Of a stretch of DNA of 64,000 nucleotides, positions 15,001-54,100 are shown piece after piece (the first letter of the stretch is position 1; every line of letters begins with the position of its first letter). The position numbers were made by a program, and so were the translations under genes. Origin of the DNA: Marsupella aquatica (taxonomy: Eukaryota > Plantae > Marchantiophyta). A model generated the notes under the pieces. That model was not told the origin of the DNA. It saw only the letters and a program-made list of their open reading frames with translations, and made no database searches. The DNA lies in contig OZ316899.1 in NCBI GenBank assembly GCA_973895155.1, positions 2,687,455-2,751,454 of the forward strand. Reading direction: 5' to 3'.

Positions 15001-15574
15001 TCCAGGTCATGATATTCAAACGACTGCCAATCGATCATTTGTTTTTGTGCAGGGTCCAACTCTTGAGTGCACCAATCCAACTTCTCTACTCCACATTTGT
15101 CACATTCACCTATAATACAGGCTTTTTGGTGGCACTCGTTCTCAGGCAATCTAGGACAGAGAGCTTCCTCTATCCAGCCACGAACTGAGGTTATGGACTT
15201 TGTAGATGCCATACAAGAAGAAATGGGTACAACACCTAAGGGTCTACAGATATCACATTCACAAGGACAGTCCTTATTGTGCTGGTGCCACCTAAATTTG
15301 TTAATTGCCTCTTTCAGTAAGTCCATCTCCACATGTTGTTTGCAGCAACAAACATTTTGGTCCTTCATCTTGCGAACATAATATGGCTTGAAGTATATGA
15401 ATGACCGCATCCCTACAGACACCCCATTCTGCTCCCTTGTGCACCAGTCACAAAATGCTGAATAGAATTGATACTGTAAACATACAAGAGAGTTTTATTA
15501 GAAATACTATAGCAAATAGACACCCTCAAATGTGCAGCCATAAAAATCCCTAGATATCTGGGTACTACTTACTT

Positions 15575-16586
15575 TTAGACTGAAGTCCTTCAGTAAGGGT
15601 TGGAATCCTCATTGGAAGACTACCAGCAAAGCTTAAGGACTAAAGTCCATCGGGGAGGAGTACTACAATCATTTGGTCAAAGCGCTTCACTCGTTGACAA
15701 AGGACTAGTCTATAGACGTAACACAACCCAGGACTATAGTCCTTGACAGAGGATTAAAGTCCTTATCGAAGGACTACATAGTCCTCTGATGAGGACTAAA
15801 GATAGTCCTCGACAAAGGAGTAAAGTACTTCAATAAGGACTACAATCCTTGAATAAAGACTATAATCCTTTACAAAGGAGTCAAGTCCTTAAGTAAGTAC
15901 TATAGTCCTTTACAAAGGAGTAAACACTTGAGTAAGGACTATAGTCCTTTACAAAGGACTACAGTTCTTGAAAGAATAAGGACTATAGTCCTTTATGAAA
16001 GCCCGTACCAAGGAGTAAAGTCCAAGGACTATTAGTAGTCCTGTTAAAAGGAGTAAAGTCCTTGAGAAAGGACTATAGTCCTTTACAAAGGAGTAAAGTC
16101 CTTGGGGAAGGACTATAGTCCTTTACGAAGTAGTAAAGTCCTTAGTAAGGACCATTAATAGTCCTTCACAAAGGAGTAAAGTCCTTTACAAAGTAGTAAA
16201 GTCCTTGAGTAAGGACTACAGTCCTTTACCAAGTAGTAAAGTCCTTGAGAAAGGACTATAGTTCTTTACAAAGTAGTAAAGTCCTTGAGTAAGGACTATA
16301 GTCCTTTACAAAGTAATAAAGTCCTTGAGTAAGGACTATTAATAGTCCTTCACAAAGGAGTGAAGTCCTTTACAAAGTAGTAAAGTCCTTCAGAAAGTCC
16401 TTTACAAAGTAGTAAAGTCCTTTGATAAGGACTATATAGTCCTGGGCAAAGGAGTACAGTCCTTTGTCTAAGGGCTACAGTCCTTTTCCCAGGCAAAGGA
16501 GTAGAGTCCTTTGCTAAGGACTATATAGTCCTTGACGCTTAGTGAGGCCCTTGGCTAAGGAGTATAGTTTTTATCCAAGGAGTAAA
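15575..16586. repeat. Intronic minisatellite-like array of aaggactatagtcctt / aaggagtaaagtcctt units (about 20-bp period)
   Basis: About 30 agtcctt-type units counted by eye. The array resumes at 27685-27900 on the far side of the MULE. Confidence 0.9.
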
Positions 16587-22598: not shown

Positions 22599-23261
22599 CT
22601 CTTCTCAACATACAAAAATACAACGACTATGTTTTGAATCGCACATATGAATCCTATTTGCAGGACCAAAACTGGGTTTTTCCCAACGGAAACAACAATC
22701 CAAAAAGATTGTCAGTCGATTCCCGTTGATTTTACCATTATTTTGTCTTTTACTCAACGTATAGGGACGTCTCTCATGCTAGCGATCTCGCTAGCTTGGT
22801 TTTGATAGTTTTATGGAAAGAAAATCGTTGATTTCAACTCTTTTAATGATACCTGTGTCATTGAGTTTATGCCAGCGATCTCGCTAGCCAAAAAGTCAAA
22901 CTGATTTTTGAGGAAGTTTACCGTTAGGATTCCGTTGGGAATAGTCAACCGGTACCATAATGTCAACGGTACAACTGGAGTATTATTTCTGGATAAGATT
23001 ATCGGTCGTGAAGGTTGTTGTTTGGGTTTTCCAAAAAGTACAACTAGTGGTCCCTGCCAGGAGATTTTTGTTATTCCTTACATCATACTGTCGATCATTG
23101 TCAGTATTCACTATCGTAACTCTGTAAGGCTTCGGAGGGAGTTCGTAGCAGTTTGTACGGCGTCCTAATTCTCCGAAAGGAGGTGCTCTGTGGACGTTTT
23201 TGACGCGTGCAGCCGCTGTAGTCTCCGGGCTCGAGCACTCTTCTCCAAAGGGTTTTATTTC

Positions 23262-26200: not shown

Positions 26201-26878
26201 TTGAATTTCTTGAGAGTTTTAATGCTAGCGATGTCGCTAACAAAATTATAATTTTCAGCTACCAAACATATCTGGTTTATGTGTTAATTTTCTATTTTCC
26301 GACTAAGTTAATGCTAGCGAGCTCGCTAACAAAGTTAGCATTGTTTCTGGTGTATTTTGGTTTTTATGCAGGTGTGCACTCTCATCCTGGATGTTTTTTG
26401 TCGGGTGGAATTTAGTGCAAAGATTCCTAAAGACCCAGCGTATGTTCCATTGACGTCTTCGGAAGATGCAAGACATAAGTCAATGTTGAGTGTTTGTTAC
26501 CCTAAGACTGACCCCTGTCCAGAAGCGGCTGTTGCTGGATCAAAAAGGCTTTCAATTGGGTTCATGCAAGCCGTGATGGAATTCCTCACGAAGCCCAGAG
26601 ATATAGTCCTTGACTAGACTGTGTGTGACGGTAGCTCGTTTTTTGTCGGAGAATTCTCCGGGAGATTTGTTGTCGGTGTTGAAGACAGGGACATTCTCCA
26701 TTGCTGTGCAGAAAAAACTTTAAACAGTGTTCTGGCGAGGCATTCGAGCAAGGCAAAGCAGATTAGGGATCAGCCAGCCAAGGTTAATCAAGACGCTGGG
26801 TCGGATGATGAGTTCACGATTCCAGGGGATGAACAGGCTGGGCCTTCAAGCGAGAAAGACAAATTCGACCTGGAGTAA
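23262..26878 (+). CDS. MULE cargo gene: ParB/Srx-like N-terminal domain plus C-terminal beta-class N4C/N6A DNA methyltransferase-like fold (about 1085 aa; one in-frame TAG)
   Basis: Exons 23262-23965, 24060-25420, 25507-26189 and 26372-26878 splice in frame at GT-AG. Motifs FCVFDGNHRLYSW (about 23800-23845), HLGFISLPTG (degenerate motif IV position) and KRLSIGFMQAVMEFLTKPRDIVLD*TVCDGSSFFVGEFSGRFVVGVED (motif X/I/II pattern). TAG at 26615-26617. A further 3' exon (26913-27320) is possible. Confidence 0.7.
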
Positions 26879-32607: not shown

Positions 32608-34470
32608 ATGGTAGTTGGACGGAGTATGTTTCAAGTGAACCAGCTACCGACTCCTCCAACTTATGACGTGGTCTACGAGTAGAGTGGACAAAAGTTCCTG
32701 AGTTGGCTCTCCACAATGGAGATTCATCTCCAAGCGTGTGTTGAGCGTTCCACTTAGGCTACCGCAACCGCTCCTTACCTGAAGGACTATGCCTTGACTT
32801 GGTACAAGTCATGGAAGAAGACACGAGAGGACTCCTCCTTGCCGTTAACTTGGGAAAACCTGGTTGAGGGACTCCATGCTCATGTCACCACTAAGTACCC
32901 GGAGTAGCACGCTCAGAATGTGTAACGGAGATGAGCTTCAGGGGTGATATCCAAAAGTTCATCACTTATTACCAGAATCAGTTGGCGTGTATCCCGGCGG
33001 GACAAGAGACCCTACATACACAGCTTCACAACTTTATAGTGAAGCTCCCGCCGTTGCTCACGGAAAAGTTGCAAGAAAAGCGTCATGAGTTCAAAACGCT
33101 TTTTGACGCCTTTGACAAGGCCACTACATTGGTGAATAACCGATCGGACTTGGCGAAGGTGGGTGGCAAGGGATCTGAGGGGGAAGCTGGGAAAGCAAAA
33201 GGTCGCGGGAATAAGCGTAAGCAACTTGAGGGGGCGGGGGCCGGTGGTTTGGATCCCCAACCCCACAATGGAGAAGCTAAGCAAAACCGGAAGGCCGACA
33301 ACTTCAAGAAAGGAACCTCATCGGCGCAAAAAGCAAAGAAGCAAGCACTCATGGAGTAGAGGTGGGCGGAAGGTTTGTGCTTCACGTGTGGTGCCATGGG
33401 CCATCAAAGTAAGGATTGTTCCATGAAAGGTGGAAAGCCAAGCGGAGATGGAGGGCAGAAGAGCATTGAGGTAAGTATCACTCTAACCAAACCCTTAGTA
33501 GGTGACAAGGTCCCTGTAGGGGATGTTCCTGCCGGAGAGAAGGTGTTGTTGCGAGAGAAGATACCTAAGGTTAAGACAATGGATCCTGAAAAACTGATTT
33601 TTGTGAATGTCACTTCTAACGGTAATCTGGGTGTTGCTTTGGTAGATACAGGCGCGACCGCCTGTTTCATAAGTGGGCAGGCGGTAGCACGTCTTGGGGT
33701 GGACGTGCAAGAGTTGCTGCAACCGTTAGTGTGCAAGTTTGCCAACGACACAAATGGGGTAGTATCAAGAGTAGTACATAGACTTTGAGTAGAGGTCATA
33801 GGCAAACAACAAAATTTTGTTAGTCAGGAGATGTTCTACGTTCTAGACGGTCTAGCCGTAGACTTCATTTTGTTGGTAGGTTATCTCAGGAAGCACAATG
33901 TTACCTTGAAATCGGGGGGTGAAGTGCTCCATTTTCCCAATAAGGGCGGTGAGCCCATTGTTGTACACAAAATTACCAAAAATAAAGAAAGAGTTCTTAA
34001 AGTAAGTAAAGTGTCGTGGTTGTCTCCGTGTGTATCGGCAAAGCAATGGTGGAAAGACTTCAAGGGTGGACATGAATGTTTCTTCTTTCATCTCCACCCA
34101 GTTAAGGAGGCTGCTTTGTAGCCAAAGGTTAATTTGGCTAAGGTTGGGCCCGTTGTGGTCGAATTCCTAAAATTTTAGAGGAATTCAATGACGTGCTCTC
34201 GCAGAAGCTACCTAAAGGTTTACCCCCGCGGAGAGAAGTGGATCACCAAGTTGAGTTGGAGCCGGGTTTGGCTCCTCAGGCTAAAGCTCCTTATGGTCTG
34301 AACCTGAATGAGCAAATGATGTTCAAGAACGCCTTGGAATAATTGATCAACCAAGGGTTCATTCACCCTAGTAAGAGTCCTTACGGGGCGCCCGCGCTGT
34401 TTGTGTCCAAAAAGGATGGTACTTTGAGATTGTGCGCAGATTACCAGGCCCTCAATAAGCAGACGGTAAA
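32608..34470 (+). pseudogene. Gypsy A gag, protease and RT N-terminus
   Basis: Zn knuckle CFTCGAMGHQSKDC; protease ALVDTGAT; [38 protein letters not shown]. Several stops. Confidence 0.9.
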
Positions 34471-34519
34471 ATCAACCTATTCATTAAAAGTGTATTATTA
34501 TTTGATTTATGTACTTCTG

Positions 34520-34815
34520 GGCTTGAAAAAGTGTACATTTGGCCAATAAAAATGTACATTTGGGGATAGAAAAGTGTACAATTGGCCTAAAGAGTGTACA
34601 TTTTGGCAATGAAAAGTGTATATTTGAGCATCAAAATAGGTACATTTGAACTTAAAAAGTGTACATTTGAATACATTTGGCCTAAAACGTGTACATTTGA
34701 GTAAAAAATGCATACATTTGGCTTTAAAAGTGTACATTTAAGTGCATTTGGTCTAGAAAGTGTAGCTTTGAGTGCAACAAAGTGTACATTTGGCCTAAAA
34801 AGTGTACATTTTCCT
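34520..34815. repeat. Left subterminal array of AAAGTGTACATTT motifs
   Basis: More than 10 copies of aaa(g)tgtacattt. Confidence 0.9.
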
Positions 34816-35047
34816 AGCAACTCTTATTATAATCACTTAAAAGAAAGGAATGAATAGAAAAATATTTTTATTTATGCAAAACAAAACATTCATATTCATA
34901 ACGATCAAACCTTTAGGAAATTAGGAGATAATATAATTAACACTCAAATAACTAGTACGTAACTTACTATGTTAGAATGAGTGACTATCTTACATAAAAA
35001 CTAGTAACTATCTAATTATACCTTGAGTTTGCTAGTAACAACTAAGT

Positions 35048-38000
35048 CTACTTGTCCATCCTTTGGAGATAACTTTGGACAATTTGTAGAACATTTCGAG
35101 GATTCTTCAAACCTCTGCTCGCCATGTTTTCTTCTTTCATTCCAGATTTAAAACCATACATTGCAGAATTTGCATACTGCCAATGTTGAGTGTTCTCACC
35201 AAACCCTAGATCGCGTTCCCATGTCTTAGTGGACATGAACAATTTAGATACCGTGCACTCTCAGTCACATCAAGTTTAGAGTATTTAGGCCTCCACCATT
35301 CGACTAGAAACATTGGAGCAGAGGAGGGTTTGTTGAAGCAGTAGTTGGGATTTCATTCTTAGGGTCCACTGAACCCAAAGCCCTCACCAACCAGAAATGA
35401 CCTCCACCGTTTTTCTTCTCCCAGTCATCCTCGGGTCGAAGAAATACAAAGTTCCCTTCACAAATATCCTTTAGGGGAATCCACCGTCCTTGTTCTCTCT
35501 CAACTCGAGATCCAACAAATGGTGCTACTTGATCTTCCATCTCTTCCAAGACCTCATTTTGAAGAGCCGTCATCTCTGCATTCTCCTCATCTTCACTTGG
35601 AGGACCATTTTGTTCCAGTTGGTTGACCTTGTAACCAGTGCCGTGGTTAGTCTTAGGCCAAAATCTGTTTTTCAAGGGAAATTGAGTACTTCCCTCCCCT
35701 TCTAGTGCAAGGCCATTTGTCAACAACTCCACAATTCTCTCCCAATATTTCACAAGAGGAAATTTTTCCTTATATGCTATAGATGTCTCATCAGTGCAAC
35801 TCCTTCTCAAAAAATCAAGGTACTTGTTAAGAAATGGGATAATCTCTTCAGATTTTTTGTGTATCTCTCCAATGGATTAGCTAAGGGCTCTCCACTAGGT
35901 AAAAGAAGAGAATTTGTTGTCAAATCTGTTGCCCAAATGCACCTTCCATCAACTGGAGCCCAAGCCTGCTTTACATGAGACTTATACTGAAATATTGGTA
36001 CATTATCTCTCATAGAGAAAAGAAATGATACGGGTTTTGATCCTCACCATGTTGGGTGGAGACCGTCTCCATCTAACTCTCGGCTGCATCTTCAAAACCA
36101 ATATACCTATTCATTGGAATAGTCTTTGGTTCCAAATATCCCTTAAAAAATGCATCAAAGTCAAGAAGGGCTTGAAAGAAAGGTCTATGAGGTTCCAAAT
36201 AAAGGCCATCCAACATGTCACCTGTCTTGTCTCCATTGTACTCCCCAAGGTCTTGAAGACACTTAGCCAAGGATGTCACAGTGAAATTGGCATCTCCTGG
36301 CCAAAGGCCAGTGACACTAAAGTGTGCATAAACTCCAGGATCCCTACCATGGGTCAACATCCCTATGAGAGCAATAGGTAGTGGCATTCCATGACCTGAA
36401 AGCGATTTAGGAGTACTGACCATTTTTGGAATCCACGTCTTTATTTGATCCATCTTGTCGTGAATGATGCAAAGATATTCTCCTGGATGTTGCTTGGCCA
36501 TCACTCGATGAGTATAATAAACATATCTACGTGACATTTGCTCACGAAGATGTTGCGCTTGTTTTTCTTCAATTTTAGCATGTACTTTTTTCCTTCTTTC
36601 TTGCATCAAACTATCTTTATATTCACAACAAAGAGTACACTTGGCAAATGCACCATCTTTGTGGAAACTGAAGTTTGCAAATGATTTGCTCCAAATCTTG
36701 TACAGAGTATTCTTTGTAACTGGAGGAAGGCCCTCGTCCTTCATCTTTGTTCTCACATCTTCCAGAATCTCCAACTTGTAACACGCTGGAAGACGATACT
36801 CAATGGAGTCTGTCCCATGAGCCCCAACATAAGGTATATGAGGCATGGGTTCCGCATTTCGAGTCAAAAAATCCTACAATAGAGCTCGTGCATGCAAGGT
36901 ATTTGACCTTGTTTTCATGGAGCCCGTGTTTCCATGGAACCCAAATTTGCAACCTTCCACATATCTCCTTTTGTAATCATAATATTTTGTGTGGCTAAAG
37001 CCATGGATAATTGCAAATGCATGTCTACATACGACCATACCCTTGAGAACATGGTGCCCCTTATCACAAACATCATCTTCTCTGTAGTGGAAGAGGTTGA
37101 AAATGTGTGATGTTTTTGACTCGCTAGAATACCGTGAAATTCTATCCGAATATCTTCTATGTCTTCTCTTGGCATAGTCAAACAACATTTCTACTTGCAA
37201 AAATTCTCTCTTTTAATTTCATCAATCGAAGCTTCCGTTGTTTTTGAAACTGCCTTGGTTTCCAACAACCTTCTCTTCTTTTCAATCGGATCTACATGAC
37301 TCCTCTTGTTGAAATTGTATGGCCTTGTGTGCGGCATTCCTCTATCATTAATATTTGGATAGAGATCATCCCTATCCACTGACTCCATCCTCTCTGAACC
37401 TTCAACCAAAATATCCGACAAAAATTTCTCATTTGCAAGTAGATTTGTTGAATCAATTTGCCATCGAACCAAAGTAATTACTCCCCTATGGATGTTGGGA
37501 AAGTATTGTGATTCCACCACATCTTTCACAGCAATCCCGACACGGTCCTCGCCAAGGATTTCATCATCAACCGCCACCGTTTGTTGAGGCATAGTGGTAG
37601 TCCCTGTGGCAACCCTATTGGTTCGATCTGAACCAATGTATAGTTTGACCAACTTTGACATCCAATTTGACCGTTGGAAATAGTCACAATTAGTTTTAGA
37701 AATTTCGGCTGATGGAGACTCCACAACAAAACTCCGCTCTATGTCAATATTGTCACCCGCATCCTTCTTTGAGAAACTCTTTCTACTTCGGACATCCGCT
37801 ACATCCCAGAGAACCCATGAGTCTTTTGCCTCATCAATTGTTTCAGCCCCACTATGTTTGTAAGGTAAAACCCTACTCCCATGAATGACATCAGTGACCC
37901 TCACACTGATCCGTGATTCACCAAGTAAAATGTTGTGACATTTGTCCATTGGATTTGTATTAAAAACAACTCCAAGGGCTACACAACACCCAGAGATGAA

Positions 38001-38210
38001 CATTTCAACCTCGTCCCCTTGCCTTAGAGTGGTTGATGAGTCCTCCTCTACAATTGGATTTTTCTCCAAATTACTCTCCGGTCGATTTGAACAACTACCT
38101 ACACTGATGCGTTTTTGAGAATTTGTTGTTGCTGATAGATATGCGCAAGACAAATCCCAAATAATGCAAGAATCAATGGCATCAAAAAGGTTTTCTACCC
38201 GAGGCATCAA
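35048..38210 (-). pseudogene. DUF7869/Sola1-like transposase with two N-terminal Tnp1/DUF8039-like repeats; catalytic core apparently deleted
   Basis: FAKCTLC...H.......R.VY...R...KQHPGEYLCIIHDKMDQIKTWIP...LIGMLTHG...WPGDANFTVTSL. The LQLDN..NKN and VGHTHEDID motifs expected next are missing. Stops and frameshifts at about 37190 and 36870. Confidence 0.75.
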
Positions 38211-38544
38211 AAATGATAGTTTTGCGGTTTGGTCAAAAACTTTGTCAATGAGAACGCCAATTCAATTCTCTCTCAACAATATATTTTGAACACTATCCTC
38301 CGAATTGATTTTTTGAACTATCCCGCTTGCAAAGTTGTAACCATCAATAGTCAATATCACATTGTCGCCTCTCACAAATGTTCCCATCATTCTTTCACCT
38401 GCACAATTTGAAATGTAAATTATTAGTTAAAGATGATCCCAACTAGGAAGCGGAAAGTTGTCAATCCTATCTAGGGACAGCGCATATGACGCATAAAAAA
38501 CCATGAACCTAATACCCAAACTGCGGATATAGATGATCCCTATC

Positions 38545-39370
38545 TAGCCCTAAAATCCTTTATTACTAAATATCCAGACGTTGGATAGGGATGATCCCTG
38601 TCCAAATAGTGGATAGGGTCACTATCCAAAATGGCAGATAAAGATCATCCTTGTCCAAACAACGGATAGGGATGATCCCTGTCCAAATGAAGGATAGGGT
38701 GATCCTTGTCCAAACAACAGATAGGGATGATCCCTGTCCAAATGGCGGATTAGGTGATCCTTGTCCAGGCAGCGCATAGGGATGATCCCTGTCCAAATGG
38801 CTGATATTGATGATCCCTGCCCAAACGGCGGAAAGGGATGATCCCTATCCAAATGGTGGATAGAGATGATCCCTGTTCAAATGGCGGATAGAGATGATCC
38901 CTGTACAAATGGCGGATATTGATGATCCCTGTCTACATGATGGATAGAGATGATCCCTGTCCAAATGGTGGATAGGGTTGATCCCTATCCAAATGGCGGA
39001 TAGAGATGATCCCTGCCCAAATGGCGGAAAATGGTGATCCATGTTCAAATGGTGGATAGAGATGATCCCTGTCCAAATGGCGGATAGAGATGATTCCTGT
39101 CCAAATGGTGGATAGAGATGATCCCTGTCCAAATGGCGGATAGAGATGATCCCTGTCCAAAAGGCCGATAGGGATCATCCTTGTCCAAGTGGAGGATAGG
39201 GATCATCTCTATCCAAAAAGCTGACATGGACAATCCAAGTATGTAGACGTGAATCTAAAGATAGTAAGATCCATGTCCAAATGGTGGATAGGGATGATCC
39301 CTATCCAAACAGCTGACAAGGACAATCCAATTATTTAAGTAAACTTGATCTCTAGACAATAAGATCCCTA
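38545..39370. repeat. 28-bp tandem array (atggcggatagagatgatccctgtccaa) between the transposase and the cargo gene
   Basis: About 20 degenerate copies of a quasi-palindrome GGATAGAGA-TGA-TCCCTGTCC. Confidence 0.9.
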
Positions 39371-40459
39371 TCCTGAGTTTCACTAGTCCAATCTTCTCAA
39401 TTCAACTAAATCAGACAACCCTAGGTATCTAATGATTTCAAAATTTGCAAATATCAATGGAATATTTTTCAATTCAAGAGTAATTAATTGAGAGTTACCT
39501 ATATTGGAAATGATTCTTCAACCCCAAAGTCACTTGATTTTATGCTATCATTTTACTAACTGTCAACCTAATGACTAAAATATAGTGTTGAAGGGTAGCT
39601 ATATGTAAGCTTGTTAACTAGATGCTTCCATAGTGTGGAAGGAACAAATTTTCTTGCGTATATCTAAAATAAAAGAGGAGAGGTTAAAACTGGATGTTTG
39701 GCGATTCTTTATAAATTCCAAAGTTTCTCAATAGAGCTCCGTAATAAACGGAGCTATTACGGAGCTTGTTGAGAGACTGAATGAAAATCTAAGAAGGAAA
39801 ATAACAATGAGGTGGCTCAAGGGGTTCTTATACCATTGTTCAAAAGGGATGGAGTGTAATTCTCGTTGTCAAAGATGAGGCAAAGCGATAAGGCGCAATC
39901 AACCTTCACCAGCGGCAGAGAATTAGGGCTTGAGGGCACGCAGCATGATAAAGGGGTGGGTTCGGCCTCACATTGTCGGCCTCACATCATTGGCCGTACA
40001 TTGTCAGCCTCGCCCTTGGGAGGGGGTAAAGGAGGCAAGAGGTCCTCTCTTGACCTCGTTCTTCATTTCTCCTCCTCCGCTTCTCCTCCTCCTCCACCGC
40101 TCCTCCTCCTCCGCTCTTGCTCCTGTTGTGCTTCCGCTCATCTCAATCCTCCGCTCCTCCTCCTCCTCCGCTCTTGCTCTTGTTGTGCTTTCGCTCCTCT
40201 TGTGCTTCCTCCTCCATTGCTACTCAGTCTCCACCGCCGCCACATTAGTTGCCCTAGATCTAACGCCCCTTGATCCGCCACGTGTCCAGATTGCCACGTG
40301 TTCAAATATGGAGTCAAGTAGACCTATTCAAGTGGACTTGACTACAGAGCCAACAGAGGAGACGGATCTCTCCTCCATTGCGGATGTGGTAGATACAGCC
40401 CTGGAGGATTCTAGAGCCTTTCAATTGCTCAACCCAAGTGAGTACCTGAAGTTTTAGGC

Positions 40460-41040
40460 ACTGGACAAAGATCATCCCTATCCAGTTGGATAGAGATGAT
40501 CTCTATCCAAGTAGAGGATAATGATAATTTCTATTAGTAATTCGATACGGATCATTCCCATCCTCTCTATGGATAGAGATCATCCCTGTCCAGTTGGATA
40601 GAGATGATCTCTATCCAAGCATAGGATAGTAAAGTTCAATAGAGATGTTAGTAATTCAATACAGATTGTTAACATTCTCTACCTTGATAGAGATCATCCC
40701 TGTCCAATTGGATAGAGATGATCTCTATCCAAGCATCAGCTAGTAAATTTTGATAGAGATGTTAGCAATTCAATACAGATCGTTAACATTCTCTACCTGG
40801 ATAGAAATCATCCTTGTCAAGTTGGATAGAGATGTTAGTAATTCAATAGTAATCCTTGTCCAGTTGGATAGAGATGATCTCTATCCAAGCAGAGGGTAGT
40901 GATGATTTGTATTAGTAATTGCATATAGATAATTCCAATCCTATGTTTGAAATCATCTCTGTCCAGTTGGATGGGGATGATCTCTATCCAAGGAAGGGAG
41001 AGTGACCTCTAGTCAAAATTGATAGAGATCATCTCTGTCC
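40460..41040. repeat. Intron-1 array (about 110-bp units) with the perfect palindrome TTGGATAGAGA-TGA-TCTCTATCCAA
   Basis: Exact copies at 40486-40510, 40594-40618, 40708-40732 and 40864-40888. Confidence 0.9.
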
Positions 41041-42729
41041 AAACTTATAGAGAACCCCAAATTTCCAGTGACAAAACTAATAATTATGCATGGTTGTGGC
41101 AATTGCAGGAAGTACTCTCAATGCATTGAAACCACCAATTTCAGAGGCAGATTGTTCTGAGGGAGTCTTGCTTGAGCAGAGCAACCCAAACTTCCGTTGG
41201 GGCCTTGAGTTCTCCAGAGTTGATTTTGATTATCTTAGCACAACAAAGAGACAAGAACCAGTGTTGTGCATAAAGGTCAGAATGTCAGAAGGAGAGACTC
41301 TTGTAATTGGACTTGTAGTCTTCGTTGGAATTGAAGGAAGAGGATTTGTTTCAGTCATTCTTGAGCTCCATGAAAGAATAAGGTGGGTTAAACTTCATCT
41401 CCCATCAAAGGCGTATTCCTCAGAGTTCAATATCAAGTGGTCTGCAGCTGGAGAACTTGGCATGTTGTCAATGGGATTTTTCCCAAAATCATATTCAGCT
41501 CAGAAAGTGATTGCAAGAGTGAAGGGGATTCTTCCACCCGACCTCATGTATGGGTTCCAATATGTGAAGCTAAATATCCATAAAAACCAAGGGAATTATA
41601 CAATGTCGGTGACATGGATTTTAAATAATCTGCTCGACAAGGCAGGTTTCCTATCTTCAGAGTTAAGTGTTTGGCTTGATAAGAGCATTGCATTTGATGA
41701 GGAGTTTGTGATGGATAATGCAAAAAAGTGGACAATTCACTACCCAAGCCGATGAATGTTCCACCGGTAGCGGTGAACAAGCTTCCACCTGTAGTTGTTA
41801 ACACGGAAGTTCCCAAGCCACCAAAAGTATCCCAGGAGACAACAGGGACCGCAAGAACAACAGCTGGGACCGCAGGAACAACAGTTGGGACAAGCACCAA
41901 AAGAGTGGTAGGGAGGCAAAGACAAGGAGAGAGCAAGGAGCACGAGAAAATTGAGACACTGCCAAAGGAACCCGAGAAGAAGCCAATAGGGAAGAAGAAA
42001 TAGAAGACTGACAAGTCTATCGTGCGGTCAACCCCTGCGGAAGTACAGATGCTCCCAGAAGATGAGGGAGACAAACTTGATGCCCGTGAGGAGAAGAAGG
42101 TCTTAGAAGGAAATGATGTTCTCCAGAGAATAGAGCAGTACTATACTTTTGGTATAAATGAACTGTTTTCTATTCCAGTGGAGAAAATTTTGCCTGCACC
42201 GGCAAGATTATGTTATAGGATGCTCAATAGTACCCATGTGAAGCACATAGCCAAATCCATGGTCAAAAACCTTGGACATGAACCTCATGTCGCGGACCTG
42301 CTTCCTTACAATCCGAAGCTTAGAAAGTTGCTCCATTTTGACAGCACGGAGAACGACTGCAAAGACTTTCTTGCAGGTGTGAAGAAAGGCGAGATTGGCT
42401 TCTTTGCCATCAGTGGGCAACATTCGGCTAGGGCGGCCAAGTGGGTTCTCAAATGGGCCAAAATTGATGCCAAGTTGATAGTATTGGCAAAAAAGTTAAA
42501 ATACAGGAAGTCTAGATTATTGTCAGACCTTACACCATCGGCTATATTGGTTGAGCACTCAATGAGATCAAATGCCATCAATTCAATGATGGTGTTTCAA
42601 AGATACAATTGTTCATGCAAGGAAACAATTCCTTGAATGCGGAGCACCAAGAAAGCCAAAGCACGGGGATAACAAGTCAAATGCCCAAGACAATCAGAAA
42701 TTTCAGGTGAGAAACGCTTTTCTTGTTTG

Positions 42730-43220
42730 GAGAGAGATGGTCTCTATCCAAGAGTATGACCGTCCGCTACATTGATTTTAGTTCAATATATTTTTGATTA
42801 TGACTTGGATGGAGATGGTCTCTGTCCAAGAGTGAGACCGTCCGTTTCAAAGATTTTACTTCATTCTACTTTTGGTTTTGACTTGGATGGAGATGGTCTC
42901 TGTCCAAGAGTGTCACCGTCTGTTCCAGAGATTTTTCTTCATTCTACTTTTGGTTTTGACTTGGATGGAGATGGTCTCTGTCCAAGACTGTCATCGTCCG
43001 TTCCATAGATTTCTCTTCATTCTACTTTTGGTTTTGACTTGGATGGAGATGGTCTCTGTCCAAGAGTGTCATCGTCCGTTCCATAGATTTATCTTCATTC
43101 TACTTTTGGTTTTGACTTGGATGGAGATGGTCTCTGTCCAAGAGTGTCATCGTCCTTTCCATAGATTTCTCTTCATTCTACTTTTGGTTTTGACTTGGAT
43201 GGAGATGGTCTCTATCCAAG
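42730..43220. repeat. Intron-2 array, 6 x 78 bp, each unit with TTGGATGGAGA-TGG-TCTCTGTCCAA
   Basis: gacttggatggagatggtctctgtccaag recurs with a 78-bp period from about 42802 to 43220. Confidence 0.9.
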
Positions 43221-43247
43221 AGTGTGAATTTTGGTTAATTTAGATAA

Positions 43248-43433
43248 TGTTAGAATATATTTAACCCTTAGCCCATATGATACAAAGAGGTATGCAATAC
43301 CTAGATATAAAGAGACACAAGACTAGGAAAGGGTAGTTACAACTACCCCAATGTACAACATATAATAAGCCACATTGGCTTAAGGGAATAATCAATCATC
43401 TTTGTTGGTGTATATACATTTCATAACTTAACA
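43248..43433 (+). repeat. Copia 5' LTR
   Basis: tgttagaata...cataacttaaca. Confidence 0.97.
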
Positions 43434-43591
43434 CGTTATCAGCACATGATTTTGCTCCTCCAACAACTCTCGAGCTACTCATAGGCCTCTTGTGAATTTC
43501 TTTTTTCTGTGAACGAAGCATCGAACGAAATTCCCCAAGACACATTTTTTCTTTTCTTTCGCCAAGTACACCACAAAAATTTTCATCGACT

Positions 43592-46500
43592 ATGACTACA
43601 TTGGAGAAGCTCCAATTCCCATTGCTCACAACAGATGGCGACAATTATTTATCTTGGGCACATAATACAAAAATTGTTCTCAACATGAAAGGCCTCGGCG
43701 ACATTATCTTAGCAGATATCAATGGCACATTACAACAAAAGGCTCAGGCACTATATATCATTCGCCATCACCTCGCTGCCGAACTACAACTTGAATACCT
43801 TACAGAGTTTAATCCTCGAGTCCTATGGGATGCTCTCAAATTGAGATTCGACCATCTGCGTCTAATTTCCCTACCAGATGCACGAAATGAATGGATTCAT
43901 TTACGAGTTCTAGACTACCCTACAATTGCGAAATTCAATAGCGCCTTATTTCGGATAACTGCTCAGCTAGCAGCCTGCGGCGAACCAATCGATGAAGCAG
44001 CAAAGATCGAAAAGACTCTTTCTACATTCTCGGCAGCGAACATGCAGTTATCACAGATTTATAGACAACGCCATTTCACCCAATTCTCAGATTTGATTGC
44101 AGTCATGCTCCTGGCTGAAAAGAATGACCTCCTCCTTCTGAGGAACTCTCGCGAGCGACCACCAGGCACGCTTCCTAAACCGGAAATACAATTCATGAAT
44201 ACCAATAGAGGTAATTCCTCTTACAATCGACCTCGTGGCCAATTTAAAGGCAATCCAAGTCGTTTTAATCAATTCCACAAGAGACAACATTTTCGCACAG
44301 ACAAAGGCAAAAACTTCAAGCCTCTCATGAATTCTTGGTATCGTAACCCCAACCATATGCCAAATAAACCTGCACAGAATTACCCCACAAATAATCAGCC
44401 CAAGTGTTTCCGTTGCGGTGGGATAGGGCATATCCAAAAGAATTGTAGAATTCAAGCTCACCTAGTCAAACTATACCAGGCCTCCCTCAAAACATCCAAC
44501 ACCTTAACAGCCGCACATCACTTGGAGATTGATGACGATCTCTCCAAATATACGCTTGCACCTCCCCCACCAGAGGTCCATATAATATCACATGGAGTAA
44601 ATGACACATCTCTCGCCGGTGCTGATATTTGCATTCTTGACAGCGGCACTTCTCACTCCATCCTAAAAGACAAATGTTATTTCCAGCACATATACCCATC
44701 AAATAGACCTGTGACTACTATCACAGGTATAAACCAATTAGAGGAAGGCCATGGACCTGCCCAACTTACCCTTCCTCAAGGCACAACCATTAAAATTGCA
44801 TCTGCCATATATGCCCCACTCGCGACACGAAACTTACTAAGTTTCCATGATGTCCGTCAAAACAATCTCCACATACGCTCTGCACCCAACAACCACAGAA
44901 ACTCTCTACAGATTTTTCGAGAAACTGATAATGGCCCCATCACAGTACTAGAGACATTACTACTCCATCCCCCCGGCGTTTATGCCACTAAGATCATGTC
45001 TTACAATTCCCAACGACAACAATTATCCCCAACAGAATTATGGCATATCCGCCTAGGCCACCCAGGCCCAGGGATGTACCATAAAATTATGAAGAACACC
45101 ATTGGCATACCAAAAGGAGTACACCCATCCACGAAGTTAGACACTTGCATCCCCTGTGCACAAGGCAAATTTATCACTCATCCAGCTTCCACTAAGAACA
45201 CCTATCAAATCCCTGACTTCCTCTCACAGATCAATGTGGACGTCTGCGGACCTATTGATCCACCGAGTGGACCATTTAGGTTTTTCCTAGTAATGATCTG
45301 CTCCTCAACCAAATGGTCCTCTGTTTCTTTAATTTCCACCAGAAACCTTGTCTTTGCCAGACTGCTAACACAGCTTATACGTCTTCGCACTCAATTCCCT
45401 GACTCTCCTACCAAAATAATTCGAATTGATAATGCTGGCGAATTTACATCACCAGCATTCGATGACTTCTGTCAAGTCCTGGGCATCACAATTCAATACT
45501 CAGTACCATATGTACATTTCCAGAATGGTACTGCAGAGGCATTAATAAAACGTTTACAGATGATCTCAAGACCTATGCTATTACAGACACAACTCCCACT
45601 TACAGCCTGGGGACATGCTATACTCCATGGCGCTGCACTAGTGCGATATAGACCATCGGCTTTTAATATTTACACACCACACCAACTAGCATATGGCTCT
45701 ATACCAGATATTACACACCTGAAAGTGTTTGGCTGCCTTGTTCTGGTACCCATTCTTGGCCCCAAGCACACCAAGATGGGACCACAGCGTCGACGTGGCA
45801 TCTATATTGGCTACGACTCTCCCTCGATAATAAGGTATCTCGAACCCACCACTGCTGATGTGTTTCGAGCTCGATACCAGGACTGTAAATTCTGTGAAGA
45901 CACCTTCCCAACACTTCTAACTCCAGCACAACTCTCCAAACAGCCTGTCTCAACACACACATTAGACTGGACAACAAAGGATCCATTCTAGAATGATCCT
46001 CGTACTCAATTGACAAACGATGAAGTGAAACGCATTCTGAACCTCCATCAAATTATGGAGAAAATACCTGACGCATTTAATGATGCTACAAATGTAACAA
46101 AATCACATATAGATGCAGCCAATACTCCTGCGAGAATTCATATACCAGATACTCGAGCCACAGACCTCGCTCCCAAGGCTAAGCGAGGCAGACCTTCAGG
46201 TTCCAAAGACTCTAGACCACGGCAGAAGACACCTGTATCAACACATTTATCCTTACAATTACCGCCAATTATACAAGATGACAATGAAGAAATATCCATC
46301 CACTATATGCATACTGGACATTTATGGCATCGAAATTTAACTGAACCAGATGAGCATTTTGCTTTTCTTATATCCCAGGATATAACTAAAGATTTACCAG
46401 AACCCCGGACAATTAAAGAAGCACAACAACGACCAGACTGGCCCAAATGGAAATCTGCTATTAACTCCGAACTTGATTCTCTGATATCTCGCCAAGTTTT

Positions 46501-48267
46501 TGGAGAACTCCGAATCATCCCTGCTGCACAACACCTAACTGGGTATAGGATTATATTGATACGCAAACATAATGCCGCAGGTGAAGTAATCCGCTATAAA
46601 GCCAGACTCGTGGCTAGAGGCTACACGCAAATATATGGCAAAGATTACGACCTTACTCATTCACCGGTCATGGACTCCATTACCTACCGATATCTGATTG
46701 CTTTTCCCTCACACATCAAATTCGTATGCATCTAATGGACGTGGTAACTGCTTACCTTTACGGTATACTTGATACTGACATACAAATGCAAGCTCCACCT
46801 GAATTAATTCAGAGGGTAATTTTCCACATTAAGGGGGAGCATACAACCTCCCCAACCCCGGACCTAAAGTCGGGTATTGATAAGATTGTCCCTACACAGG
46901 ACTTTAAGGACCATCTCATTCACTCAGGCCAGATGATACCTACTGAAATACATGACTCATCAGCGGTCCAAAATAAAAAGGCCCAGCAAATTGCTAGTGG
47001 TGAACAGTCAGCGGATTCACCATTGAATTATACTGACTTACTCGCTGAGGTAAATCCTGTTCACCACAGAATCAATAAAGCCAAGAAATCAGAGAAAGCA
47101 TTTGCTGTACAGGTTCTTAGGTCACTCTATGGTTTAAAGCAGAGTGGCCGCATCTGGTATAAACGTTTCCGTGCAGAGATGCTTGCACTTGGTTTTGTGA
47201 ATGAGGACATTGCCCCTTGCCTTTTTATCAAAAGACATGGCACTGAATTTATAATCATAGCCATATATGTCGACGATATTAACCTAATGGGTACTAAACT
47301 CATTATGGATCAAACCATTACCACACTTAAGAGCATATTTGAAATGAAGGATATTGGTCAACCCCTATTCTGTATTGGCATTCAATTTGAACATTTATCC
47401 AGCGGTATTCTTATTCATCAATCTACATATACCAGAAAACTATTAAAACAATTCAACATGGACAAAAGCTATCCAGTCACGACACCTATGGAAATTCGAT
47501 CTTCAGACACATCCAGAGATCTGTATAAGCGCAGGACCGAACACGAACCAATCTTAGGCCCAGAGAAACCTTACCTCTCTGCTATAGGAGCCTTGATGTA
47601 CCTGGCGAATCAAACTCGCCCAGACATCTCTTTCGCTGTCCACTTGCTTGCTCGACACAGCTCCCAACCGACTATTAGACATTGGAATGGCATTAAGAGG
47701 ATACTGCGCTACCTTCAAGGTACAATCGATACTGGCCTCTATTACCCTAAAGATGTGCCTAATGAATTGATTGGTTACGCAGATGCAGGTTACCTTACAG
47801 ACCCCGATGATGCGAAATCCCAGACGGGATATGTATTTCTACAAGGACATACAGCCATATCATGGAAAAGTACCAAGCAAACTTTGACGACCACATCCTC
47901 CAACCATGCGGAAATCATAGCACTATACGAAGCTAGCCGAGAATGCCTGTGGCTTCGACAGCTTATCAATCATATCCAGTCGTCTACAGGCCATGCAATT
48001 CTTACCAAGCCTACTATCATCTACGAGGATAACAACCCTTGTGTTGATCAGATAGTTAAGGGCTTCATCAAGGGCGATCGAATCAAACATATTGCCCCCA
48101 AATTTTTCCACACGCATGAACAACACGGGGACCAAATCAACGTTCAATGGATACCTTCTAAAGATAATCGCGCTGACCTTTTTACAAAGCCCTTACCTCG
48201 CATTCTCCACGAAGCGCATTCGATTGGAATAGGACTCCGTAGATTATCGGACTTCACTGCAATCTGA
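43592..48267 (+). pseudogene. Copia gag-PR-INT-RT-RH polyprotein with one stop (45989-45991) and one frameshift (about 46715)
   Basis: DGDNYLSW; CFRCGGIGHIQKNC; ILDSGTSH; LWHIRLGHPG; IRIDNAGEF; KMGPQRRRGIYIGYDSPSIIRYLEP; YKARLVARG; YVDDINL; GYADAGY; IIYEDN. Confidence 0.95.
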
Positions 48268-48576
48268 CTTTTCCACCTCTTCCACGATACCTCCTCTGTT
48301 CTATGCATATTCTACTGAACGTATGTTCTCCATACTCGAACATTTCGACACATCCTATCAAACACTCGTTTAGATTTAGCCATACATGATTACACTCCTT
48401 TCTTACTAGTTTTAACTCATTACATGTAAGGTAGTGACACTCTTTTTACCCCAGAAGAAAGCAGGGGGTTTTTAATGAGGTCATACCCCAATGAGTTTTT
48501 CCATTATACTCAGAACTAGACTTAAATTTATTTCCTAAATGGTTACTTTAAGAAACATAAAGTAACCAAGGGGGAG

Positions 48577-48762
48577 TGTTAGAATATATTTAACCCTTAG
48601 CCCATATGATACAAAGAGGTATGCAATACCTAGATATAAAGAGACACAAGACTAGGAAAGGGTAGTTACAACTACCCCAATGTACAACATATAATAAGCC
48701 ACATTGGCTTAAGGGAATAATCAATCATCTTTGTTGGTGTATATACATTTCATAACTTAACA
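48577..48762 (+). repeat. Copia 3' LTR
   Basis: Matches the 5' LTR base for base by eye. Confidence 0.97.
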
Positions 48763-51322
48763 GATAAATCTATGGAACATTCCCCCCAATTTTTGATTGC
48801 AGGATTATTTGGCATTGGCCAGGATGACCATGGGGAGAAAAGACTTGAAAAATGTTTACTAGTTGCTTTTTGCCGAGAATGATTTTTGAGTTATGGCGGT
48901 TAGTGTGCCAAATGTGGATTGACGGAAATCTTCCCGATGGAGCTGGTACACAAGGAAACAAAAGGTCCGAAAATGCGATAACGGTTGCAATGTTTCATTG
49001 TTTTGATGGCGAAATCTCAAATAGAGATTTGACCAGAATTTTGAACAAGGTGAAGTCAGGTCAAGATTTATTGAAGAAGGATCCGACAAATAAGTCAGAT
49101 GTTCCAGCGATAGAGGAGTTTGCAAAGGAGGTGAAGATATTGATCAAATTGAAGTCTGTTATTGGAGATTACTACTTCAAGAAGGATCCAAATAACTTCC
49201 CAGCAGACACTCAATGGGTTAAAGTAATTGAGGTCCTCCCATTGTTAGGTGCCAAGTCGGAGTTGAACAGGTGCCGAAGAGCGGCTGGTGAAGTATGGTT
49301 GACAAATTTATTGAAGTCTAATCATACAAAGGAGAGTGAGATATTGCCAATGACATTGGTGATGCGTCTAGATGATATTTACTGTCAGAAGTTTGGCGGT
49401 GGGACAAGTTCTCGGACTCAGCCATGGGTCACATTTTTTAGTAACAACCTAATGAAGACAGTGGATCCGGAGTCGTTGGAAGAACAATCTCCAACATGCC
49501 CTCTTGTGATTGTTGATTTCAGCCGACTTCAACAGAAGGAGTGGATTGAAGCAGAAATTGTGGTCCTCTTCCAATATATAGTAGAGCTACCACGGAATCC
49601 CACCATCGTTGTGATGATAACTGTCCATCCGGGTTATCTTGTACTGAATGTCCTAAGCGCTCTTTGTAAATTAGGACATTCAAGAACTTTGAGCATTCAC
49701 ATTGAGTATGGGAGTTATTATCAAGATGATCAACCTCACCCTCATGACTCATGTTGGAAGGGAGGAATAGAAGAAGTTATCTTTGCCAAAATTTCTCGCA
49801 AACAAAACGTCAGTTGGGATGAAGTGTTCAAGCCCAACCAAATGAAGCCAAAATGGGTGTATGGTGAAGAGGATACTGATTTTGTGGTCGAGAAGATCAA
49901 AAGGAATGGAACGGCAAAGGGAAAGGACACGGACGAGGAGTCAATGAATGAAGATCTACGAAATGTGGTGACCCCAGAAGAGGCGGCAATACTTCTGCAC
50001 ATGGCACCTCAATTTGAGACTGTTGGGGCTCGTAGTGGATGGGTGAATCCTCATGCCAAACCCATCCCAATGATCCAAAAGATCATCAAACATTATCCAA
50101 ACCAAGGGATTTGATTCTTGACTTTTTCTCTAGTGGTCAAGTGATGAAGACATCCCTTTTTTCTCAACGTGAATGTTTTGTTTGTTGTGACTCTCAACAT
50201 GAGAGACATTTTGTGGAAGCATACGCTTCGTTCCTTTTTGAGAGGGTTCCCACCATCAAAGATCGTTATGATCGCTATAATGTCGGTGGAAGTTTTAGAC
50301 ATTGGGAACCCTCTTCTGCCGCTGTTGCTGTTGATGATGAATCAAATGGTGATCAAGAAGATGGAGCTGACCAATCAGTCAAAGGGGATGGGCCATCAGA
50401 GGGGGCATATGTGAAGAATTTGGATGACCGAGTTGGCGAGGGTGAAAATATTGACCCTGTGGAAGACGATATGATTGTTGGATTTGCACCTTGTAGTTCA
50501 CCAATTACAGATGTTGCCCCCATGGGCCCCAACGAGGGCCAGGTTGATGATAACTTGGATAGAGATGGTCTCCATCCACAAGTGCCTGGACAAGAGATGG
50601 AGAAGATGAGAGAATCAGAAGTTGATACATTTGAGAAATTTTCTTCAAACAACCTTCTCAATCAAGGTGCAGAGAGGCATGGTGAGTCCAATGAACTTGA
50701 CACATTGGGATTGAGACCAGAGACCATCCAAGTACCTGACATTCCCGTGAATGAAGCAAGTGCATCCACGACTGCTGACAACCAGGCAGGTGCTTCAATT
50801 TGTCCTGATACACTCTTTTTTGCTTCTGATGGCAAATTAGTGTTTGTTCGGTCACAATCAAGAAGTCCTGTTATCCTTCCACTCTCAAAAAAGAAAGGGA
50901 AGAGAGTAGGATCAACGGGATATAAGTCACTTGAATATGATTGTCGATGTTACGTGTGGAAAAGTGGACCAGATGTAGGAACCAAAGTACCGTTGGATGC
51001 TGCTCAATCAATTTTGAACAATGACTCGTACAAAAAGCAAAAAGAGATCCAGCTTATAGAAGCAAAGAATTGGGATTGATAACTCCAGTTTGATCTGCAC
51101 CTTATTGAGAGTACCTCTGATGTCAACTATGAGATCCAACAGGAGCTTGGTGATGATATCTTGATTGATGAATATGGATCTCATTGTTAGCCAAGGGCTT
51201 ACTAAGATTTAGCCATGTGATCTTATCAATTTGATATAATCTTAATAGTCTGTATAATTATACTTCAAGCCTAACAATTAGAGCATCAGTATCAATATCC
51301 ATTTCCTCTTTACGGTTTCTCA

Positions 51323-52110
51323 ATGAATACGGTCAGTATGCATATTTTCTTTGTGGTTGGCCACTTGTGTTTTTGGATTGAGACCATCTCTATCCAAACT
51401 TCAAATGTGTTTTTTTCTCTAAGATTGGTATTTGTTGCACTTGCAGAACCAAGACCTTGTTCCATCAAGCGCAAAATGCTGATTTTGGATCTTAACAAAA
51501 TACTTTGGGATTCGGTTGAATTCCAAAGCAAGGGCAAATCCAGAAATGTTGTGACCCCAAGTGGAGTGCATTGGGATAGAAAAAATGGAATTAGTCGCAT
51601 GTATACAGAAAGGCCAGGGCTCCACGAGTTTCTAAAGTTAGTTTTTGACCGATTTGATGTTGCAATTTGGACATGTGCTGGGATACAACGAACAGTGAAA
51701 ATGTTGAACATGATGTTCACTGCTGAGGAGCGATTGAAACTTAAGTTTGTATTCACATAGGTGGAAGCCTTTGACATAGGCATTCAAAGGCGTGACATTA
51801 CAAACGGAAAGGCAAATGTGCTACTGAAGGATGCCTCGTGGATGACTCCCCCCTTAAGGCATTTGCCAACCCAAGCATGACCGGACTATTTCCAGTGCCC
51901 TACACGCATGCCAATCATGGAGATAATTTTCTTCTAACAATTCTTTGGCCTTGTCTTGAGAAATTATCACATGCAAGTGACATTAGATGTTATCTTCTTC
52001 TGAATTCTCCATTGTGGTCTCTATTGCACATAAAGAGAGACAAGGTAAAAAATGAAATTACTTATGATCAACTTAGTAAGAGATGTGCAACAAAAAGTTG
52101 GAAGTCATAG
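51323..52110 (+). pseudogene. FCP1/NIF-homology HAD phosphatase-like cargo gene
   Basis: KMLILDLNKIL...ERPGLHEFLKLVFDRFDVAIWT...DDSPLKAFANP. Stop at 51758-51760 and a frameshift or deletion near 51835. Confidence 0.75.
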
Positions 52111-52709
52111 TTTACGCATAGTGTGTTGGACCTCAATAGCAATGAGATTCCTTGGAACGTGAAGCATCGTATATGTAGTTTACGTCATGAGGCAAAACTT
52201 GACGATGCACTTGTCATCTCACTTGCTAAAGCATTTGTAGGACGGGACTATGGGTCCATATAGAGAAAATCCCAGACACTTTTTGCGGGAGACTATAGCC
52301 ATTAGGAACAACACCACCAAGTTTCAGCTCCCTGAAAATAAAGAGACTTGCAACCATGACAATAGGGTAGATAGTAGAGGAGACAGGGGCACGTGCTCAA
52401 ATACGCATTGTAAGAGCATTTTATTTAGAGATCTGACTCATGTTAAGCCCTTTAGATAGAAGAAATACATTGTAAATTGTATATTGTATATTATTTTATA
52501 ATCTATTTGGAGAACTTGTGTCCTTTTGTTCACACATTATCAAGGGTATTTGGGCTTCTTTGTGCTGAAATGTTTTTATAAGTATCATCTCAATCCTACT
52601 ATTCTTTGTGAATTAATAAATAATGATCTCTATCCTATTATTCTTTGTGAATTAATAAATAATATAATATGTATTGTTTATTAATATAATACTAATATGA
52701 TTTGGCCTA

Positions 52710-52812
52710 TAAAGTGTACATTTAGGGACCAAAAAGTGTACATTTGGGTTTCTTAAAGTGTACATTTGGGTTTCTTAAAGTGTACATTTGGGGACATGAA
52801 AGTGTACATTTC
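52710..52812. repeat. Right subterminal AAAGTGTACATTT motifs of the Sola1-like element
   Basis: Five copies just inside the right TIR. Confidence 0.9.
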
Positions 52813-52862
52813 AAGACTGATTTGTGAACAAAAGAAAATACACTTTTAATGAATAGGCTGAT

Positions 52863-54100
52863 TAAAGAACAAGTAACCGTTACCTCATATGGATGACCTC
52901 TTCGATTGCCTCTCCGGGGCTAAGAAGTTTTCAAAGGTGGACTTGTGGTCTGGGTATTACCAGATCCGCATGGCTAAGGGAGACGAGTATAAGACCGCGA
53001 TGCGCACAAGGTTCGGATCCTATGAGTTTTTGGTTTTGCCGTTCAGGTTATGTAATGCAACCGCAACGTTCATGAAGATGATGAATACCATCTTCCATGA
53101 CTTGTTGGACCAAGGAGTGGTCGTCTTTATTGACGACATCCTAATCTACTCAAAAACATTGGAGGAACATGAGCAGTTGCTCAGAGAAGTGTTCTCTCGC
53201 CTTTGTAAGGCTCATCTCTTTGCTAAACCTAGCAAGTGTAAGTTTGCGATGAACGAGATTCAGTTCCTCGGCCATACCTTTACCCCGGAAGGGATTACGC
53301 CTAGTCAGGACAAGCTTAAGGAGATCAAAGAATGGGAGGGCTCGTCCAATGTGAGGCAAGTTAGAGCCTTCTTAGGATTTACGGGGTTCTATCGGAGATA
53401 CATGAAAGACTATGCGAGGATCGCAAGGCCCCTAAACGTGCTAACGTTGAAAAACAAAGTGTTTGTGTGGACACAGGATTGAGAGTTAGCATTCCAAGAA
53501 CTTAAGCGGCTAATGATAACGCCGCCGATTCTAAAGTTACCCAAAATGGGGAAACCGTTCAAGATTTGGACAGACGCAAGTGATTATGCCATTGGCGCCT
53601 GTCTTCACCAAGACGGGCGTCCTATGGCCTTCCAGTCATGTAAGTTGGAAAATCACTGGATCACACCGGAAAGGGAAATGTATGTTGTGATCTATGCGTT
53701 AAAGAAGTGGGAGATTTACCTTAAGAACGGTCCCAAAGTGGTAATCCACATAGATAGCTTGCCGGTTGGGTACTTCAGTTCAAAGCCAAGACTAAACCCC
53801 AAGGAAATGCGCTGGCAGATGTTCTTGGCGGATTTCAATTTTGAAGTCCGCCACGTTCCAGGGAAGACAAATACGGCAGCTGACGCGTTATTGCGTAAGG
53901 ACCAACATTGTGTCAATGGGATGACGATGCTCAAATCTGAGTGGCCAAAGGTTTTGGCTGCGGCATATGGGGATGACAAGTTAGCTAAGGAACGGCAAAG
54001 CAATGGGTGCAGCCAAGGCAAGGTAAGGCACGTATCATTGGGGTTGGATACGACACATAATGTACAGTTATCGCGATACAAGCAGAGGTGCGTGTACATA
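52863..54100 (+). pseudogene. Gypsy A RT, RNase H and linker
   Basis: FSKVDLWSGYYQIR; VFIDDILIYS; FLGFTGFYRR; WTDASDYAIGA; NTAADAL. Confidence 0.95.

Follow-up and report, generated by a model that had tools for sequence, protein, structure and literature searches.

A decayed gene with ParB-like and methylase-like folds in a Sola1-like transposon of the liverwort Marsupella aquatica, probably a pseudogene copy of an accessory helper gene

A 64,000-nucleotide stretch of DNA from the liverwort Marsupella aquatica (assembly GCA_973895155.1, contig OZ316899.1, positions 2,687,455 to 2,751,454 of the forward strand), referred to as the window, was analysed computationally. Positions 40308–51190 of the window are probably a pseudogene copy of an accessory helper gene of an 18.4-kb Sola1-type transposon. 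A probability of about 0.6 was given to this reading, including the view that the helper protein targets DNA. Two predicted folds, a ParB/sulfiredoxin fold and a beta-class amino-methyltransferase fold, are fused in one gene, and this gene lies inside the element. The same three-gene layout was found in an element of the liverwort Calypogeia fissa. The window copy itself is a dead pseudogene. Its parts are as follows.

40308–40437, plus strand: putative exon 1; the splice from 40437 to 41109 preserves the frame and was deduced from the sequence
41109–42706, plus strand: exon 2, with the conserved N-terminal region, a basic linker and the ParB-like domain; two frameshifts and one TAG
42100–42594, plus strand: ParB/sulfiredoxin-fold domain, containing the invariant SGQHS
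48803–51190, plus strand: exon 3, with a helical region, the methylase-like fold, an acidic stretch and the conserved C-terminal tail; four lesion sites
49515–49526, plus strand: DFSR, following strand beta-4, in the place that DPPY (motif IV) takes in canonical enzymes
50043–50191, plus strand: VNPHAKP (resembling motif X), DFFSSGQ (resembling motif I) and ECFVCCD (strand beta-2); the family profile aligns this block to M.RsrI

The order of domains in the helper protein is N-terminal region, basic linker, ParB/sulfiredoxin fold, helical region, beta-class amino-methyltransferase fold, acidic disordered stretch and C-terminal tail. The window exons total roughly 1,350 residues, and the protein of intact relatives has at least about 1,000 (P0073, 1009 residues). 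The conserved N-terminal region of about 200 residues corresponds to 41109–41755 in the window and to 9014–9487 in the Calypogeia locus, L001. Neither this region nor the helical region after the ParB-like domain had a match in Pfam or among PDB sequences.

The window copy has no uninterrupted reading frame. At least eight frameshifts or stops were counted, consistent with the heavy decay reported in a preliminary description of this DNA. Exon 2 carries a frameshift near 41728–41755, an in-frame TAG at 42001–42003 and a frameshift near 42593–42618. In exon 3, a TAG at 48860–48862 replaces a tryptophan of the relatives, which is TGG in read-derived contigs of related copies; two nucleotides are lost near 48882, where such contigs have an extra TC; and a double stop lies at 51077–51082. 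Past the double stop the frame runs to ...IDEYGSHC, with a stop at 51188–51190, and the relatives end in ...EYGSF. The range first given, 40308–51079, thus covers a real gene and ends too early, since the coding sequence continues to about 51190.

The motifs first pointed out were located precisely. IPVEKI (42172–42189) and ISGQHS (42409–42426) are both inside the open reading frame (ORF) 42022–42636. VNPHAKP (50043–50063) is in ORF 48852–50114, and DFFSSGQ (50120–50140) is one frame over, in ORF 50039–51079. The frameshift of one base between them lies at the run 'caaggga', about 50103–50109, and the block is in a single frame in the Calypogeia copy and nine other relatives. This agrees with the preliminary description, in which a methylase signature was recognised after correction of a one-base deletion. 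It had also been suggested that the SSG of the window was derived from SGG by a C-to-T change on the opposite strand. The window codon is AGT and the Calypogeia codon is GGA, with G in eight of the nine relatives that cover this column. The change was therefore G to A, equal to C to T on the other strand, as suggested. A similar pair was seen elsewhere: P0016 (contig L005) has DFFSSG and its sister copy P0073 (contig L003), of the same 90% cluster, has DFFSGG. This G-to-S change and that of the window copy apparently arose independently.

Intron 2 holds a retrotransposon, at the place where it had been reported.

43248–48762, plus strand: copia-type long terminal repeat (LTR) retrotransposon in intron 2; its two 186-nt LTRs are identical, and the duplicated target is GATAA

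The identity of the LTRs indicates a very recent insertion. Its 3' end and the acceptor downstream, at 48802/48803, are 40 nt apart, and its coding region was found in three ORFs (43592–45991, 46010–46735 and 46726–48267). That the parts before and after the retrotransposon come from one gene was examined with two relatives. P0073, from environmental contig L003 (271–3300), is a single uninterrupted ORF without introns and has both SGQHS and DFFSGG. In the Calypogeia fissa gene model P0001, the ParB-like exon, ending in KFQ, is spliced directly to an exon that aligns to window 48803 onward. These comparisons support a single gene across the retrotransposon, not two different genes. In the liverwort copies of the helper an intron follows the ParB-like exon; the L003 copy has no introns.

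The fold of the ParB-like piece was investigated by structure prediction. The AlphaFold2 model of the window's own 165 residues, with an alignment of 26 relatives as input, had a predicted local distance difference test score (pLDDT) of 89.8 and a predicted template modelling score of 0.85. In the Foldseek search against the PDB, the first 43 rows were all ParB, Noc, sulfiredoxin, KorB, PadC, SbnI or the ParB-like Atu1540, with E-values from 2e-3. VIA-align, run independently of Foldseek against 48,161 representative chains, gave Z-scores of 8.2 for PadC, 8.1 for KorB, 7.3 for the serine kinase SerK, 6.7 for pNOB8 ParB, 6.2 for sulfiredoxin, 6.0 for SbnI, 5.5 for Atu1540 and 5.2 for human Srx; the next value was 3.3. 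These Z-scores are middling, with a single fold at the top of the list and the domain covered. Two independent aligners therefore support the ParB/sulfiredoxin fold of the predicted model, at the level of the fold, and the ParB-like identity first proposed is upheld at that level. At the sequence level, no Pfam ParB_N or DndB model reached its gathering score for the window piece. DndB was the commonest sub-threshold Pfam match in the relatives (3 of 26, best E 0.0022), and the ParB-like profile gave a spurious fimbrial match and no other among PDB sequences. Atlas neighbours of the model include phage ParB_N and bacterial DndB clusters. For ORF 42022–42636, the nearest entries in the language-model atlas were fungal clusters with DUF3723 (score 0.95, 184 shared features).

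SGQHS makes up the only invariant columns in the alignment of the 26 relatives. Its serine occupies the place of the arginine in DGQHR/GCHR, and the GxxR phosphate motif (Box II or P-motif) is absent in all 26. In ParB-fold proteins, changing the P-motif arginine abolishes binding of nucleoside triphosphates (NTPs) (PMC12704722). With SGQHS lacking this arginine, it is doubtful that the helper's ParB-like domain kept canonical nucleotide binding.

An exhaustive search with a 420-residue piece of the window containing the methylase-like region found 64 relatives at E ≤ 1e-3, 19 of them at E ≤ 1e-30. These relatives and the invariant SGQHS show that the motifs did not arise by chance. Several relatives matched PF01555 (cut-off 26.7 bits), and two were above the cut-off: the L001 ORF with 27.9 bits and P0024 with 29.2 bits. 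The split pieces of the window copy did not reach the PF01555 gathering score, and an NCBIfam search gave nothing useful. Residues 1–520 of P0007, the closest intact relative (45% identical to the window piece), were modelled with a pLDDT of 85. The first 42 Foldseek matches of this model were all N6-adenine/N4-cytosine (N6A/N4C) amino-methylases of the N6_N4_Mtase kind, with E-values down to 4e-7. VIA-align gave Z 18.6 with 219 aligned residues for CcrM. For M.RsrI, Z was 16, and residues 198–482 of the model were aligned to 37–300 of the chain, which takes in the complete catalytic domain and its DPPY strand. The model has a Rossmann-like fold with the permuted beta-class motif order IV...VIII, X, I, II. 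The family profile also matched M.RsrI at E 9.4e-8, with NPxAKP...GDTVLDFFSGG aligned to HPTQKP...GSTVLDFFAGSG. Together, the fold match, the M.RsrI profile match and PF01555 in two relatives strongly support a beta-class amino-methylase fold, as had been proposed from the motif block. A DDE/Tc5 transposase was also considered for the 420-residue piece; its score of 0.75 in the atlas feature search was below the useful level, and this candidate was rejected.

The motifs of this fold were compared with those of known enzymes. At motif I, the SAM-binding motif (FxGxG), the family has DFFSGG and the window copy DFFSSG, aligned with one gap of one residue to DFFAGSG of M.RsrI. The residues that follow strand beta-4, in the place of motif IV, are DF[SAT]R in the family; of 29 sequences, 27 have the D and 27 have the F. 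The pattern [DNSE]PP[YFWHL] did not occur anywhere in six long relatives. With DF[SAT]R in place of DPPY, this domain probably does not function as a methylase, and catalysis by the usual mechanism appears unlikely.

The element that carries the gene is delimited by the following features.

34471–34494, plus strand: left terminal inverted repeat, with the 4-bp target duplication TAAA at 34467–34470
52839–52862, minus strand: right terminal inverted repeat, identical to the left repeat at 23 of 24 positions, with TAAA at 52863–52866
35304–38210, minus strand: four ORFs that are remnants of the transposase gene; the DUF7869 match is weak (18 bits)
51323–52110, plus strand: NIF/CTD-phosphatase-like gene or exon (PF03031, 31 bits)

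The end pattern ATCA[AG]CCTATTCATTAAAAGTGTA has exactly two matches in the window, at 34471 (plus) and 52862 (minus), with 0 expected. Both are flanked by TAAA, so 34471–52862 is one cut-and-paste element of 18.4 kb. The transposase is on the minus strand, and the helper gene and then the NIF-phosphatase-like unit are on the plus strand. The window DNA is eukaryotic, and every named relative of the studied genes comes from a liverwort, either Calypogeia fissa or Riccia sorocarpa. The Calypogeia locus L001 contains a 13.7-kb element (2514–16254) with transposase, helper and NIF in the same order and ends, ATCACAGTATTCATTAAAACTGGA, related to those of the window element. Its minus-strand transposase is 40–65% identical to the window transposase. 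The only transposase domain detected was DUF7869, with a score of 18 bits for the window remnants and 113 bits for this counterpart. The ends are 24-nt inverted repeats, and the duplicated 4-bp target reads TAAA at the window element and AGAG at the Calypogeia one. Sola1 transposons are reportedly flanked by 4-bp target duplications. The inverted ends, the target duplication and the 113-bit match in Calypogeia support the Sola1/DUF7869-like class that the preliminary description had assigned.

NIF-like genes 3' of the helper, on the same strand, were found at six loci.

Same strand as the helper: NIF-like gene (PF03031) at window 51323–52110; L001 14465–15472; L003 3572–4510; L004 3339–4154; L005 3988–4629; L006 3273–4184

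The pairing of helper and NIF thus occurs in the window, in L001 and on the four further short contigs L003–L006, and it was also seen in Riccia. Either the NIF-like unit and the helper are two genes of one conserved cassette, or the unit is an additional exon of the helper.

Palindrome arrays form another part of the element.

38583–39217: palindrome array 1, made of about 23 copies of a 28-nt unit with the variant core GGGATGATCCC
40461–41053: palindrome array 2, within intron 1, with the core GAGATGATCTC
42727–43225: palindrome array 3, within intron 2, made of 6.4 copies of a 78-nt unit with the core GAGATGGTCTC

GAGAYNRTCTC was found at 15 sites in the window (36059–51390; 0.3 expected) and at 18 sites in L001 (4293–15858; 0.14 expected), in both cases all inside the element. 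In both species some of these sites are in intron 1 and in intron 2 of the helper, and the repeat units around the core differ between the two species. The palindrome was absent from the Riccia locus L002. Direct repeats of 21–22 nt are present near both ends of the element (window 34509–34811 and 52710–52811; L001 2553–2675 and 16091–16184), with ACATTTGG in common between the two species. These are probably the transposase binding sites. They differ in sequence from the palindromes, which may leave the internal arrays free as sites for another protein.

A gene of this kind was published for the brown alga Ectocarpus. Sola1-1_Ec32, of 21.5 kb, has, on the other strand from the transposase, a gene for a 1104-residue protein with ParB-like and N4C/N6A methylase domains, methylation was predicted for this protein, and green- and red-alga cases are cited in the same paper (PMC12477816). 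The window gene is a decayed liverwort member of this known kind of transposon helper. A giant Sola1 element, a gene opposite the transposase, a protein of more than 1,000 residues and a ParB-like domain followed by an N4C/N6A-type domain are common to both. By the published description, on which the comparison was made, the host differs, and DF[SAT]R, SGQHS and the linked NIF unit are features of the liverwort family.

Fusions of ParB-CTPase and N6_N4_Mtase are enriched in phages (PMC12704722), and phage clusters with ParB_N and N6_N4_Mtase are among the structural neighbours that the atlas gives for the methylase model. The phage and prophage fusions have the same two folds in the same order. 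They are shorter, whereas the helper family lacks the P-motif arginine and has extra N-terminal, helical, acidic and C-terminal regions. CcrM, M.RsrI, M.BceJIV and M.PvuII match the helper family structurally over the whole domain (Z 16–18.6) and have the beta-class motif order; the family differs from them in having no DPPY/SPPY, a glycine loop one residue shorter and a short strand 7–motif X region. The PAG3 protein of the Plavaka transposon in the red alga Bostrychia is a ParB-like accessory protein encoded beside inverted-repeat arrays and proposed to bind its own element (bioRxiv 10.1101/2025.02.11.637652). The ParB-like N-terminal domain, the accessory role in a giant transposon and the adjacent tandem inverted-repeat arrays are shared with the liverwort helper, but the partner domain of PAG3 is a 2-oxoglutarate oxygenase, not a methylase fold, and the transposon belongs to another superfamily.

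A second gene with the same pair of domain types is present in the window at 23190–26204. It is also a transposon helper gene, carried by a MULE, a different transposon superfamily, and its motif DGNHR (23190–23981) keeps the arginine that is absent from the Sola1-borne family. No similarity between the two genes was detected by BLASTP or profile comparison. This is consistent with the independence claimed earlier, though a separate origin is not provable in this way.

In the preferred reading, the architecture of the helper would have descended from phage-type ParB-methylase fusions. Given DF[SAT]R at motif IV, the methylase fold would be retained without methyl transfer, and given SGQHS without its arginine, the ParB-like domain would act without canonical nucleotide binding. 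The protein may be a DNA-targeting factor that recognises the GAGAYNRTCTC arrays of its own element. It might act together with the adjoining NIF-type phosphatase to regulate or protect the element.

Intact members of the family could instead be working, non-canonical N6A/N4C DNA methylases that mark the palindromes of their own element, as proposed for algal ParB-methylase proteins. The full beta-class fold is retained, motif X NPxAKP, the glycine loop DFFSGG and the acidic residue after strand beta-2 are conserved, 27 of 29 sequences have the motif IV aspartate, and the prediction made for the Ectocarpus protein (PMC12477816) agrees with this explanation. It was nevertheless judged unlikely, because the DPPY-type pattern is missing from the six long relatives, with DF[SAT]R at its position, and the glycine loop is one residue shorter than that of M.RsrI. 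A role in the mechanics of transposition appears distinctly less probable. The helper would then be a partition or synapsis factor of the ParB-like type that bridges or condenses the palindrome arrays or tethers the excised DNA. The ParB-like fold and the multi-copy, conserved and element-specific arrays suit such a role, but the arginine required for NTP binding (PMC12704722) is a serine in all 26 sequences, and no ParB helix-turn-helix or dimerisation domain was detected in Pfam and PDB sequence searches. Giant transposons often bear unrelated cargo (PMC12477816), so a captured host gene or a horizontally acquired gene without any role for the element was also considered. The position, the orientation and the NIF neighbour are the same in elements of two liverwort species, the helper–NIF pairing recurs on four further short contigs, and the named relatives belong to multi-copy families; passive cargo is very improbable on these grounds.

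Several points weigh against the preferred reading, a helper that targets DNA and does not methylate. The methylase model is that of a relative 45% identical to the window piece, not of the window copy, and the catalytic loss was read from motifs only. The site may serve another chemistry, since 27 of the 29 sequences have the D of DF[SAT]R and the same number have the F. The ratios of nonsynonymous to synonymous change between near-identical copies, 1.16 and 0.43, are uninformative, since they derive from 40 and 5 changes. For the ParB assignment the evidence is a predicted structure plus sub-threshold DndB matches, and Pfam, run on all window pieces, gave copia and NIF domains only and none for the helper copy. 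Read data yielded only short contigs of collapsed repeats, and a search for RNA evidence found none. Binding of the palindromes could just as well be the work of the transposase.

Both folds are under long-term constraint without the textbook catalytic residues of either. This argues for a DNA-targeting or regulatory role of the helper over plain methylation. MpDN4MT1 denotes the host N4-cytosine methylases that write N4-methylcytosine in the sperm of Marchantia. More speculatively, and with little probability in our estimate, a reader composed of the ParB-like domain and the inactivated methylase fold, the NIF-type phosphatase and the GAGAYNRTCTC arrays would form a conserved self-recognition module that marks, shields or regulates the DNA of the element, and the lineage of this transposon methylase fold may be related to MpDN4MT1.

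The features that distinguish this helper family are the degenerate active-site motifs, the linked phosphatase and the conserved, element-specific palindrome. The linked phosphatase and the palindrome core, which in two species lies inside the element only, provide a concrete protein-and-site system that is open to testing. The range of transposon ParB-methylase helpers is extended from algae to land plants, with Calypogeia fissa, Riccia sorocarpa and, as the third case, the genome of the window.

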